Shown here in pieces: positions 4,781 through 13,485 of a stretch of 64,000 bases of DNA (its first letter is position 1; every line of letters begins with the position of its first letter). Location of the stretch: contig OZ251234.1 in assembly GCA_965240325.2 (NCBI GenBank), forward strand, positions 1 to 64,000. The letters run 5' to 3'. Source of the stretch: Rebecca billardiae RCC1528 (Eukaryota > Protista > Haptophyta). Position numbers and translations under genes: made by a program. The notes below the pieces were generated by a model. That model was not told the origin of the DNA, searched no databases, and worked only from the letters and a program-made list of their open reading frames with translations.

Positions 4781-5227
4781 ACGGCCGCGCGGTCGCAGCG
4801 CCCAACCACCGCTGTCGAGCCGACCGCGCGAGCGCCGCGCAGCGAATTATCAGTGGGCCAAAGCGAGTCGAGGCACCGGGTGGATCGGCCTCGAAGGACG
4901 CGTTCCGACCGACCCACCCGACCCCCTCGACGGTCAGCCACGCCGCCAGTTAGAGCGGACGCCGCCTCGCCGTCAGCTGAGGCCTCATGCGCACGGCCGC
5001 GCGGTCGCCGCATCCAACCACAGCTGTCGAGCCGACCGCGCGAGCGCCGCGCCGAGAATTATCAGTGCGCCAAAGCGAGTCGAGGCGCCGGGTCGATCGG
5101 CCTCGAAAGGCGCGTTCCGACCGGCCGAGCCGACCCCCTCGCCAGTCAGCCACACCACCAGTTAGAGCGGACGCCGCCTCGCCGCGAACAGAGGCCTCAC
5201 GCGCACGGCCGCGCGGTCGCAGCGCCC
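4781..5227. repeat. 212-bp GC-rich satellite, ~2.1 units (distal block)
   Basis: GTTAGAGCGGACGCCGCCTC at ~4949 and 5161; same unit as 11220-13485. Confidence 0.95.
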
Positions 5228-6530
5228 CACCTTGACTGCCCCCCAGCCCCGTTTTTGGCCGCACGATTGCGAATCTCAGAGTTACTTGGCCAGTCAATGT
5301 TTAGAGTTTTGAAGAAGGCGAAAGACTATCTGGCGGCCGAAACGAGGGACGGCTGTCCCGATGGCGTTCCGGCCGCGAAGTCCGCCGGTGCCTTGCACGA
5401 GGGCGGCCGATCAGTGGCGCCTAGCCCGGTCGTCCGCGCGGTTGTGTCAGCGCACGCGCCATGTGTGTGCCCCCCGCTGTCACGGCATGTTGTGCGCCAG
5501 CACAGTGGGAGCTCCTCGCCTGTTCCTGTCACTCACGGCTAAGCGACGGTGCAGAGATCTTCAGTCCGAGCCCGCGACTGCTGAACTTCATGTGATACGT
5601 GTGCGAATCCTGGCAGAAAAGCACGCTCTGCTCCCGCAAATCTACCTGGCGAACGTGCGCTGGTGTCAATGCTTCACGCAGTGCACAAATGCCATGGCGA
5701 ATCAGTCTTCCCTGCGTGTCACAGGCCTTGGCGTTTGCACATCGACAAGCTAACAGAGACGAGTCCCGACGAGCTGCGTATGGCTGTGGTCGCATGTAGT
5801 GTGGGCGTCGAACGCCGGAGAAGGTGGTGGCTGAAGGCGATAGAAGTATGCTCTCCCATCGGGTACAAGCCAGGCTTGGAAGACGTCTGCTTGCATCACA
5901 CACACAGCTTACGCCGACCCGTGCGACGTGAAGCGCCTCAAGCGTGACGGAAGCAACCCAAGGTGCGCGCAAGGCGTGAGGAGCAGGGTGATCTAACCTT
6001 ACGCGGGCCTGCTCATCTAGCAGCGCACTCAGTAGATCGCCCCCGTCCTCAGGCGCACGATGACCACCGAATCGTGAATGTGTAGACGCTGACGCGTGCC
6101 AGCTTGCGGCGAGCAGCGACCGTGCCGGCGGACTCGGGCCTCGCGCAAGAACAAGCAGGTTTTTTTGGCGCGGAGGACGCTAGCATGACCTGCACGTACA
6201 GCGGGGAGATTGTTTGCAAGGCGTGCCCTACATACAGCTCGCGTGCCCCTCAGATATCCCGCGCGGAGAACGTCAGCAGCCCAGCATCGCAGTCCGCGCC
6301 GCAGCCCCAACCACTCAGCTCCGCTACAGTGGGCGGTTCCCACTGGGGGGCCTGCAAAACAACCGCACCCGGATCTTGGCGAAGCTTCGGCGGCTCGAGA
6401 GAGGCCTCGGGAGGCGGCTGGAGGGCGTCCCGCGAGGCAAGCGCGGGCGCTGGGGCGCGAGGCGAGTGCGAGTCCGCCGCGTGAGCCGGCGGGGAAGTGA
6501 GCGCCACGAGTTCTGAGGCGAACCGGAGCG

Positions 6531-7699
6531 ATGGCGGACGCGCGCAAGCGCAAGACCCCGCCGAATCGCAGCGACTGGTACCGCGACCAGAGGCACAAGC
6601 CGGGGCCGACGCCGCGTGCGCGCTCGCGCGGCGCGCCAACCGTGCGTCCGCGGGGTGCAAAATCGGGCACGGTGGTTCCTCACGAGTTACTGTGAGCAAC
6701 ACGCTCCAGAAATTCCGCTTCAAAACGCCCGCCGGAAGCGCGGTCACCATACCTGACATCTGCTGCGGCGCCCCTTGCGCCGATCCGCCGTGCGCAGGGC
6801 CCAAGCCGCCGCGGACTCAGCGCCCGCGCGCGGAGTGGGAGCAGCTCGTGCAGGAGCAGATGCTGGACTCGGACGCGGGGGACGAGTCGAGCGCCACGTT
6901 CTGCACCCACTGCATGCGACGTTCCTGGGAGAAGACGGCCACGGTGCGGGTCGGCTGTCTCTTGCGCGAGTTGTTCTCGGAGATGGCAGCCAAGATGAGG
7001 CTGCCGCGTGGCAACGTCGTGCAGGGCGGGCGGGTGCAGCAGACGGCGTTGAAGAAGGTAGTGATGAAGCACGTCTCGCTCCACACGGCCTTTGGCATGT
7101 TCCGCGCCTTGGGCCCGTTCTCCCGCTCGCACACGAAGAGCTGCGGGCCGCGGGCGATGCGCCTCGTGCACTCGTGGGCGGTGACGTCGGCGGACAAGGT
7201 GGCCGAGTTCTTCACGCTGGAGGCGAGCCACTACATCCTCTCTCGGCGCACGCGGGGCCCGGCGAAGGTGCTCGGCTCGCGCAAGGCGCTCGTGGCCGCC
7301 CTGATCCCGCCGATCAAGATCGTCCACGTGCAGTGGATGGATCGCAACGGCCCGTACCGGACGGTGCTGAAGGTGATCTTTCGGACGGCGTGGGTCACGG
7401 TTGCGCGGCAGCCGGCAGTGCACCTGCCGACGGAGATTCTCGGTGCGCGCTCGCGGTCCGTGCGCGCGCGCGGCGCGGAGCAGCAGCGCTCGCTCCACCC
7501 GTGGGCCAGCGGCTGATGATCGCCCGCCCCGCGCCCCCCCCCCCCCCCCCCCCCGCGCGCGCGCGCGCTCGCAGCGGAGCTGTCGGAGGCGGAGGTGGCC
7601 GAGCTGAAGCAGTACATGGTGGAGCGCCTGCAGCATCTGGCGGAGGCGAAGCTGGTGACGATGCCGACGGCGGCGGAAGCGGCCGGCGGACGATCCTGA
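6531..7699 (+). CDS. Element ORF1, Cys-rich (ICCGAPC...FCTHC) protein; probably the N-terminal part of, or partner to, the transposase
   Basis: GC3-rich coding frame ~6710-7442. Intron GT 7443 to AG 7574 continues as AELSEAEVAELKQYMVERLQHL...RS* (stop 7697-7699). Candidate start ATG 6531 (MADARKRK) is in another frame and would need a small first intron. Confidence 0.6.
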
Positions 7700-10722: not shown

Positions 10723-11219
10723 TTTTCGTCCGCGCGCTCTGCTGAAGTCGCGCTGGTGAGCTCAGACGTCGGCGCGTACCCCGCCGGCGCTAGTCTGTCG
10801 CACCCCTTTTGTTCCGAGTCGCTCAGACCGCGCCGATCGTCAGATAGTTTTGAATTTCGGTTCCGCCACTGGGACCAGCCCACTGTAGCCCCTCGCCCAC
10901 CACGAGACGGCGAGATACCGACAGAAGTGGAACGGAGCGAGCATCTATTTCCTTATTGGGGCTCGCGGGAGCCGATTGATCATTTTTCATTGAGCGAAGC
11001 CCGAGCTGGCTTCCCATTGGACGGATTGGCGGCTGCGCTACTCCGCAAGGCGAAACACTTACAGCTTCACATCCCGAAAATGCAAGTTTGGACAATAGAG
11101 TGAGGCACCCTCGTCCAATGAAATTGCTGAAAATCCCGACGAAACTTTACTCGCACGTGCGGGTACACGCAATCTCCGGGAGATATGGCCAATTCCGCCC
11201 ACTGGGGCCATTCAAGGTG

Positions 11220-13485
11220 AACCACAGCTGTCGAGCCGACCGCGCGAGCGCCGCGCCGAGAATGATCAGTGCGCCAAAGCGAGTCGAGGCGCCGGGTCGA
11301 TCAGCCTCGAAGGACGCGTTCCGACCGACCGACCCGACCCCCTCGACGGTCAGCCACGCCACCAGTTAGAGCGGACGCCGCCTCGCCGCGAACGGAGGCC
11401 TCACGCGCACGGCCGCGCGGTCGCCGCATCCAACCACCGCTGTCGAGCCGACCGCTCGAGTGCAGAGCTGCGAATTATCGGTGCGCCAAAGCGAGTCGAG
11501 GCGCCGGGTCGATCGGCCTCTAAGGACGCGTTCCGACCGACCGACCCGACCCCCTCGACGGTCAGCCACGCCACCAGTTAGAGCGGACGCCGCCTCGCCG
11601 CAAACGGAGGCCTCACGCGCACGGCCGCGCGGTCGCAGCATCCAACCACCGTCGTCGAGCCGACCGCGCGAGCGCCGCGCCGCGAATGATCAGTGCGCCA
11701 AAGCAAGTCGAGGCGCCGGGTCGATCGGCCTCGAAAGACGCGTTCCGACCAGCCGAGCCGACCCCCTCGACGGTCCGCCACGCCACCAGTTAGAGCGGAC
11801 GCCGCCTCACCGTCAGCTGAGGCCTCACGCGCACGGCCGCGCGGTCGCAGCGCCCAACCACCGTCGTCGAGCCGACCGCGCGAGCGCCGCGCCGCGAATG
11901 ATCAGTGCGCCAAAGCGAGTCGAGGCGCCGGGTCGATCGGCCTCGAAAGACGCGTTCCGACCAGCCGAGCCGACCCCCTCGACGGTCCGCCACGCCACCA
12001 GTTAGAGCGGACGCCGCCTCGCCGCGAACGGAGGCCTCACGCGCACGGCCGCGCGGTCGCCGCATCCAACCACCGCTGTCGAGCCGACCGCGCGAGTGCA
12101 GAGCTGCGAATTATCGGTGCGCCAAAGCGAGTCGAGGCGCCGGGTCGATCGGCCTCTAAGGACGCGTTCCGACCGACCGACCCGACCCCCTCGACGGTCA
12201 GCCACGCCACCAGTTAGAGCGGACGCCGCCTCGCCGCAAACGGAGGCCTCACGCGCACGGCCGCGCGGTCGCAGCATCCAACCACCGTCGTCGAGCCGAC
12301 CGCGCGAGTTCAGAGCCGCGAATTATCAGTGCGCCAAAGCGAGTCGAGGCGCCGGGTCGATCGGCCTCGAAAGACGCGTTCCGACCGACCGACCCGACCC
12401 CCTCGACGGTCAGCCACGCCACCAGTTAGAGCGGACGCCGCCTCGCCGCGAACGGAGGCCTCACGCGCACGGCCGCGCGGTCGCAGCGCCCAACCACCGC
12501 TGTCGAGCCGACCGCGCGAGCGCCGCGCCGAGAATGATCAGTGCGCCAAAGCGAGTCGAGGCGCCGGGTCGATCGGCCTCGAAAGACGCGTTCCGACCGA
12601 CCGAGCCGAATCCCTCGACGGTCAGCCACGCCACCAGTTAGAGCGGACGCCGCCTCGCCGTCAGCTGAGGCCTCACGCGCACGGCCGCGCGGTCGCAGCG
12701 CCCAACCACCGTCGTCGAGCCGACCGCGCGAGCGCCGCGCCGCGAATGATCAGTGCGCCAAAGCGAGTCGAGGCGCCGGGTCGATCGGCCTCGAAAGACG
12801 CGTTCCGACCAGCCGAGCCGACCCCCTCGACGGTCCGCCACGCCACCAGTTAGAGCGGACGCCGCCTCGCCGCGAACGGAGGCCTCACGCGCACGGCCGC
12901 GCGGTCGCCGCATCCAACCACCGCTGTCGAGCCGACCGCGCGAGCGCCGCGCCGAGAATGATCAGTGCGCCAAAGCGAGTCGAGGCGCCGGGTCGATCGG
13001 CCTCGAAAGACGCGTTCCGACCGACCGAGCCGAATCCCTCGACGGTCAGCCACGCCACCAGTTAGAGCGGACGCCGCCTCGCCGTCAGCTGAGGCCTCAC
13101 GCGCACGGCCGCGCGGTCGCAGCGCCCAACCACCGTCGTCGAGCCGACCGCGCGAGCGCCGCGCCGCGAATTATCAGTGCGCCAAAGCGAGTCGAGGCGC
13201 CGGGTCGATCGGCCTCGAAAGGCGCGTTCCGACCGACCGACCCGACCCCCTCGACGGTCAGCCACGCCACCAGTTAGAGCGGACGCCGCCTCGCCGCGAA
13301 CGGAGGCCTCACGCGCACGGCCGCGCGGTCGCAGCATCCAACCACCGCCCGCGAGCCGACCGCGGGCGCGCCGCGCTGCGAATCATCAGTGCGCAAGAGC
13401 AGGATGACGCGCTGGGTGGATCGGCCTTCAAAGACGCGTTCCGATCCACCGAGCCGACCCCCTCGACGGTCAACCACGCCGCTAG
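11220..13485. repeat. 212-bp satellite, ~10.7 units (proximal block)
   Basis: GTTAGAGCGG recurs every 212 bp (11365, 11577, 11789, 12001 ... 13273); the last unit is degenerate. Confidence 0.97.

Follow-up and report, generated by a model that had tools for sequence, protein, structure and literature searches.

The left end of a chromosome of the haptophyte Rebecca billardiae RCC1528 (GenBank assembly GCA_965240325.2, contig OZ251234.1) carries a 6-kb transposon that sits within a 212-bp satellite. The stretch analysed, referred to as the window, comprises positions 1 to 64,000 of the forward strand of the contig, and all coordinates given here are those of the window. The element is a real transposon. 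It has terminal inverted repeats, subterminal motifs, an upstream coding module and an open reading frame (ORF) for a putative transposase (Table 1), and its distinctive feature is the insertion itself, at which the satellite is interrupted without a target-site duplication.

The left flank ends with GGTCGCAGCGCCC at 5227 and the right flank begins with AACCACAGCTG at 11220. The satellite is thereby split between GCAGCGCCC and AACCAC, with zero bases gained or lost. The broken copy of the satellite motif starts at 5219, and 5219 + 212 + 5992 = 11423, which means that the phase of the satellite is exact across the insert. Joining 5219-5227 to 11220-11422 gives a gapless unit of 212 nt that is 92-96% identical to 11 other satellite units, whose mutual mean identity is 93%, and that is nearest to the units with the same GCAGCGCCC variant. 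There is no direct repeat at the junction: at no length from 1 to 6 nt does the end of the left flank match the start of the right flank. Nor can the junction be slid in either direction, even by 1 base (C at 5228 against A at 11220; C at 5227 against G at 11219). The missing duplication is genuine at this one site. A first-pass annotation of this DNA had described a precise insertion, without duplication or loss, between the left flank and AACCAC, and the flanks and the exact 212-nt register bear this out; the span of 5221-11230 that it gave holds for the insertion as such, but it takes in flank bases and the exact bounds are 5228-11219.

A parse of the left junction with a hidden, imperfect 4-bp duplication, in which CACC is a mutated AACC and the element starts with TTGA, is very improbable. 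Even though GCGCCC-CACC is only one base away from the GCGCCC-AACC of the satellite, the extra GGTG at the 3' end would then complete a perfect 8-bp inverted repeat by chance (~0.4%), and the satellite unit would become 216 nt rather than 212 nt. An assembly artefact, either a chimeric join or a collapse in the repetitive chromosome end, is scarcely credible. The region is indeed repetitive, and a homopolymer of 21 C in the element and an odd stretch in the telomere tract suggest long-read error modes, but an artefact would not yield inverted repeats exactly at both joins, nor a base-exact satellite phase, and the neighbouring element shows a normal duplication. This neighbour is a second transposon, 600 bp away, with a perfect 12-bp terminal inverted repeat TAGCCTGGTCCA and the 7-bp direct repeat CTTCTAA on both sides. 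It sits inside a ~170-bp subtelomeric unit, has no convincing ORF and is probably non-autonomous. Since its 7-bp duplication is clean, the assembly keeps duplications in this region. Because the junction of the 6-kb element is exact in a satellite whose phase can be checked, and because the neighbour has its 7-bp duplication, the junction is taken at face value.

The element begins with CACCTTGA and finishes with TCAAGGTG, so that its termini are of the CA..TG type. The first 8 nt of the two terminal inverted repeats match perfectly (chance ~1.5e-5 for fixed ends), and 16 of 19 aligned columns match overall. In a pattern search of the window, these two are the only exact terminal-repeat sites, and neither a second copy nor a solo end is found within the 64 kb; a weak pair resembling terminal inverted repeats, at 39144 and 39267, lies inside coding sequence and was hence dismissed as chance. 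The GATTGCG subterminal motif lies 8 nt further inward at the 3' end than at the 5' end. The whole 64 kb contains just four occurrences of it, and two of these are mirrored near the element ends. An inner inverted repeat, with 12 nt perfect (GCTACAGTGGGC) and 40 nt at 75%, flanks the coding part of the element, and may be formed by binding sites for the putative transposase or by the termini of another element, either older or nested. The inner repeat and the 3' terminal repeat have a common motif, CAGTGGGC(G/T)G. An Rfam scan of the element and its flanks gave no RNA family.

Table 1. Features of the element, its satellite target and the neighbouring transposon (GC3, GC content at third codon positions; TRF, tandem-repeat search)
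Feature	Position	Strand	Basis
Inserted element, 5,992 bp, 68% GC, genes pointing away from the telomere	5228-11219	+	Register arithmetic, flanks, composition
5' terminal inverted repeat, CACCTTGACTGCCCCCCAG	5228-5246	+	Alignment of both ends
3' terminal inverted repeat, reverse complement CACCTTGAATGGCCCCAG	11202-11219	-	Alignment of both ends
5' subterminal motifs, TTGGCC at element positions 28-33 and GATTGCG at 38-44	5255-5271	+	
3' subterminal motifs, TTGGCC at 28-33 from the end and GATTGCG at 46-52	11168-11192	-	
Upstream conserved module, 218 codons from first ATG	6860-7516	+	GC3 0.94, BLASTP
Putative transposase ORF, 1,068 codons open, conserved part 7825-10386	7516-10722	+	GC3 0.94-0.96, homologs, conserved columns
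Inner inverted repeat, left arm	6323-6362	+	Repeat search, sequence
Inner inverted repeat, right arm	10850-10889	-	Repeat search, sequence
Near-copy of target, GCAGCCCCAACCAC (target, GCAGCGCCCAACCAC)	6301-6314	+	
Left satellite block, 2.1 units, ends with GCAGCGCCC	4781-5227	.	TRF (period 212), sequence
Right satellite block, 10.7 units, starts with AACCAC	11220-13480	.	Sequence, TRF
Second transposon with terminal inverted repeats, 1,937 bp	2670-4606		Duplication at 2663-2669 and 4607-4613

The periodicity of GC3 marks two coding stretches in the element, ~6760-7650 in the frame of 5228 and ~7660-10450 in the frame of 5230. Both have a GC3 of 0.94-0.96, as against 0.98-0.99 in host genes. 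The upstream module ends in a tandem stop, TGATGA, at 7514-7519, which overlaps an ATG, and a Pfam search with it gave no match. Between the module and the transposase lie the run of 21 C and a change of frame, placed near 7690 by GC3, which may be a splice, a frameshift, or an assembly indel or long-read homopolymer error. The element looks autonomous, and DDE (aspartate, aspartate, glutamate) catalysis and cut-and-paste mobility are predicted for it from sequence.

The conserved columns of the putative transposase were read from alignments of 4-7 sequences. GDG is conserved, with the first candidate catalytic Asp at 8791-8793; GDLxxLRMxLG, followed by CxC, is conserved as well, with the second candidate Asp at 9079-9081. 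A C(2)C motif that starts at 9331 is invariant (FCKLCE in the window, with both cysteines in 4 of 4 sequences), as are DxxHAxxLNLxK, with its D(2)H at 9499, and xGNE, with the candidate catalytic Glu at 10312-10314. The copy in the window also has an H(3)H (H-VSN-H) at 10219, ~30 residues before this Glu. The candidate residues are 96 residues apart for the two Asp and 411 for the second Asp and the Glu. Such a signature (D, D, C(2)C, D(2)H and E, together with CA..TG ends), in so far as it is correctly assigned, fits the CACTA/Mirage/Chapaev/Transib-RAG1 (CMCT) clade, which comprises CACTA/EnSpm, Mirage, Chapaev, Transib and RAG1 together with Plavaka, ESTA and Lanisha (PMC12730594). Among the features that define this clade, the C(2)C and the 5'-CA..TG-3' termini (CACCTTGA...TCAAGGTG) are present in the element and the H(3-4)H pair is present in part, while the duplication of 2-5 bp is replaced by 0 bp at the single insertion.

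Similarity searches link the protein to none of the characterised families that were searched. Neither the window protein nor its homologs had a match in Pfam by hmmscan at E<=10, the RAG1 family and the EnSpm-type models included, and comparison with PDB chains, by phmmer and with a profile of the family, gave no match to RAG1, Transib or Hermes. For comparison with the fold of RAG1 and Transib, an RNase H core into which a zinc-binding domain is inserted, two AlphaFold models were built on shallow alignments; they are poor (predicted local distance difference test scores, pLDDT, of 44 and 43), and Foldseek with the first of them found no meaningful match (best E 0.4). The element is therefore treated as belonging to a lineage that is unclassified and bears a CMCT-like signature, and not as a Transib. 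The first-pass annotation had taken a RAG- or Transib-like element as its premise, which the Pfam and PDB searches leave unconfirmed, as do the differences from the RAG-like transposon AanRAGL described below; its statement that RAG and Transib transposases make 5-bp duplications agrees with the literature (PMC1131882), and zero bases would be a departure from it.

Relatives of the putative transposase are few. An exhaustive phmmer search with the residues encoded by 8149-10386 against 1.84 billion representative proteins found only 6 homologs, all of them distant: P0001 (36% identity, E 4.6e-21), P0002 (989 residues, E 4.5e-17), three C-terminal fragments, and P0006 (E 4.6e-4). All six come from short (1-6 kb) environmental or Logan contigs. 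Word-based homolog searches with the transposase and with the upstream module gave no match, a scan of JGI metagenome contigs returned only two sister contigs that were already known, and scans of viral and prokaryotic genome contigs gave no relatives. An exact look-up of ten start-codon variants of the element ORFs in a collection of 15 billion proteins found none of them. The family is thus, as far as sequence comparison can tell, a very rare, nearly unsampled and unclassified lineage of putative transposases. On the contig of P0002 (L001), two tandem ORFs upstream of the transposase match the module of the window (BLASTP E 2e-20 and 6e-13); the duplicated module spans 150-878 and 983-1711. 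P0004, on contig L006, has a module-like N-terminus (BLASTP E 1e-12) joined to a transposase C-terminus, a fusion that may have come from an internal deletion or from splicing. Since the module stands beside the transposase in both cases, the association of the two is conserved. No terminal inverted repeats could be convincingly delimited on the contigs of the relatives (L001 with L009, L002 and L005), and the duplication length of the family therefore cannot be read from them.

In ordinary cut-and-paste transposition, the transposase joins the 3' ends of the element to the target at two staggered positions, and repair of the gaps makes the duplication. The junction described here would be best explained if the element were a cut-and-paste DNA transposon of a rare, unclassified lineage that uses blunt (non-staggered) strand transfer into the satellite, a reading to which we assign a probability of about one half. 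The transposase would excise the element and would join both 3' ends to the same base-pair step, between the C and the A of GCGCCC/AACCAC (the slash marks the point of insertion). Strand transfer that is not staggered would leave no gaps to fill, and so no duplication. Since the junction shows neither duplication nor loss, joining at a single base-pair step is its simplest explanation. The single copy suggests a blunt mode of insertion, and blunt strand transfer may, judging from this one insertion, be the normal mode of the family. The upstream module may have a role in binding the DNA of the element or the target.

The foremost alternative, although unlikely, is that the family normally duplicates its target and that this copy entered a clean double-strand break in the satellite through end joining, as an excised and blunt-ended element, or came about by some other aberrant integration. 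RAG-type excision leaves blunt element ends, and subtelomeric repeats are prone to breaks. Moreover, the CMCT relatives all duplicate 2-5 bp (PMC12730594) and the observation made here is a single one. However, capture by end joining usually costs or adds bases, while the two junctions of this insertion are exact and leave the 212-nt register undisturbed. Next in likelihood, and also unlikely, is a transfer in which homologous recombination, gene conversion or break-induced replication copied the element out of a different satellite array or chromosome end, with the flanking satellite serving as homology. Subtelomeres commonly exchange sequence and the element has satellite on both sides, but the founding insertion would still be without a duplication, and neither a second array nor a second copy is present in the window.

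The element contains a near-copy of its own target at 6301-6314. This is the 15-mer that spans the insertion, minus one base; it runs in the same direction as the target GCAGCGCCC/AACCAC and contains the only CCCAACCAC of the window outside the satellite. In 4 of 1000 dinucleotide shuffles of the element, a match to the target within one edit is obtained; the motif was noticed post hoc. It may be a chance occurrence, a shared binding site or a relic. Sequence-directed, homing-like integration at the satellite motif, by means of a protein or RNA determinant of the element, would account for such a near-copy with its orientation, its exclusiveness and its rarity among shuffles. Beyond its post hoc character, however, a homing mechanism has to contend with the absence of a recombinase or homing-endonuclease domain in the Pfam searches and of an RNA in the Rfam scan, with a sensitive search in which wider similarity between element and satellite did not rise above background, and with the fact that 13 satellite units of the window have the junction motif and only 1 is occupied; it is improbable. 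The fuller proposition of an undescribed lineage near CACTA and Transib-RAG1, with blunt integration and with homing to a satellite motif that it carries internally as a recognition determinant, is decidedly unlikely too. The different integration chemistry or site-specific targeting that the first-pass annotation had put forward would likewise be deduced from one insertion. That annotation had also speculatively likened the target to telomeric sequence, a resemblance that finds no support, as does targeting of telomere motifs: CCC/AACC is not a telomere unit, and no insertion of the element is present in the 2 kb of CCCTAA repeats that lie ~3 kb away.

Several observations weigh against blunt strand transfer by a CMCT-like transposon. 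Every described CMCT lineage duplicates 2-5 bp (PMC12730594), and there is only one insertion here. The putative DDE assignment comes from inspection of motifs in an alignment of 4-7 sequences; of the two histidines of H(3-4)H, the family conserves just one, and comparisons of sequence (Pfam, PDB) and of fold (Foldseek with a poor model) gave no similarity to characterised transposases. Finally, the change of frame near 7690 follows tandem stops and the run of 21 C, and the copy may be defective or spliced.

The window begins with a (CCCTAA)n tract at 3-2055. Within it, at 1247-1478, ~230 nt of degenerate, AAGTTA-like repeats form a block that is either a true variant or a base-calling artefact. 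The tract is abutted by 23 copies of the 18-mer CGCAGGTAAGGGTTAGGG (2055-2468), which carries the telomere motif in the orientation opposite to that of the terminal tract. Beyond this array come ~2.3 kb of subtelomeric DNA and then the 212-bp satellite in its two blocks. A subtelomeric unit of ~170 bp is present twice, at 2468-2640, where it adjoins the 18-mer array, and at 4612-4782, where it adjoins the satellite. The satellite has the motif GCxGCxxCCAACCAC every 212 nt (4795, 5007, 11423...13331). Its units at 4795-13331 show three junction variants, GCAGCGCCC, GCCGCATCC and GCAGCATCC, which recur roughly in threes and suggest a higher-order repeat. Past the right satellite block lies very GC-rich genic DNA, the host having ~74% GC, and an interstitial telomere-type repeat, (ACCCTA)4.3, is found at 60064-60089, 60 kb from the chromosome end. 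The proteins of four host ORFs (22148-24934, 35257-36819, 39827-41008 and 49239-50285) have exact counterparts only in the Logan assemblies of the runs ERR14847148 and ERR14847151; each forms a single-member cluster, with no close sequenced relative in the protein collection. The 6-kb element may be missing from these two read sets or unassembled in them.

Each cut-and-paste superfamily is defined by a constant duplication length, which follows from the way its two active sites are arranged on the target DNA. If the lineage does stand near CACTA and Transib-RAG1 and does use blunt strand transfer, cut-and-paste transposition without duplication would have arisen in eukaryotes a second time, independently, within the clade from which V(D)J recombination emerged; a 0-bp junction would be new for this apparent CMCT clade. 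A second, unrelated duplication-free group, above all one with the motif signature of the clade of Transib and RAG1, would mean that the geometry of the active sites can collapse to zero more than once, and would open a new way of examining how enzymes of the RAG type engage their target DNA. The question of the duplication aside, the element introduces what appears to be a new transposase lineage, from a family that is nearly absent from public data (6 in 1.84 billion).

Compared with the CMCT clade as a whole, the 6-kb element has the same D(2)H-type motif and repeated subterminal motifs, and it has a second conserved coding module with its transposase, comparable to TnpA and TnpD of En/Spm or to RAG2L and RAG1L. 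It differs in that searches of Pfam and PDB detect no sequence similarity to any member, in that the duplication is 0 bp instead of 2-5 bp, and in that its family conserves one histidine of the H(3-4)H pair, although this copy has both. With Transib and the RAG-like transposons, AanRAGL included, it shares ends that start with CAC and a GC-rich target and, as far as one copy shows, a second end motif with asymmetric spacing. The distance from the second Asp to the Glu is 206-214 residues in Transib and 253 in RAG1 (PMC1131882), whereas it is 411 in the protein of the element, and Transib and RAG1 make a 5-bp duplication against the 0 bp of the single insertion here. Compared with the CACAGTG-type heptamer of the recombination signal sequence, the ends of the element (CACCTTG) have CAC alone in common; GATTGCG, at 38-44 and 46-52, resembles the second motif of such signals in its asymmetric spacing, as seen in one copy.

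AanRAGL of Aureococcus anophagefferens is ~4.7 kb long, with CACACCCAAACCT at its ends, and makes 5-bp duplications (PMC9435367). Like the element, it resides in a GC-rich unicellular eukaryote and has an upstream gene codirectional with the transposase, but its genes are recognisably RAG1- and RAG2-like (PMC9435367), and AanRAG2L has ~470 codons, as taken from ORF coordinates, against the 218 codons of the module here. The end motif of AanRAGL is not in the window, and three short motifs of the window transposase are not in the AanRAGL supplementary sequences (PMC9435367). Identity of the two is ruled out by ends, size and duplication.

Spy, of the PHIS superfamily, is the only known eukaryotic DDE group that leaves no duplication, and its authors proposed non-staggered joining (PMC4122938). 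Its signature is of the PIF/IS5 type, D(19-29)K(29)D(18-40)D(11-19)P(18-28)R(3)E (PMC4122938), with a short D-D-E spacing, a single ORF and invertebrate hosts, whereas the candidate residues of the element are 96 (D-D) and 411 (D-E) residues apart. The target of Spy, AAA/TTT, is palindromic and AT-rich, and that of the element, GCGCCC/AACCAC, is GC-rich and non-palindromic. Although the architectures of the two are unrelated, both are elements with terminal inverted repeats that appear to insert at an exact point between two particular bases, neither duplicating nor deleting host sequence.

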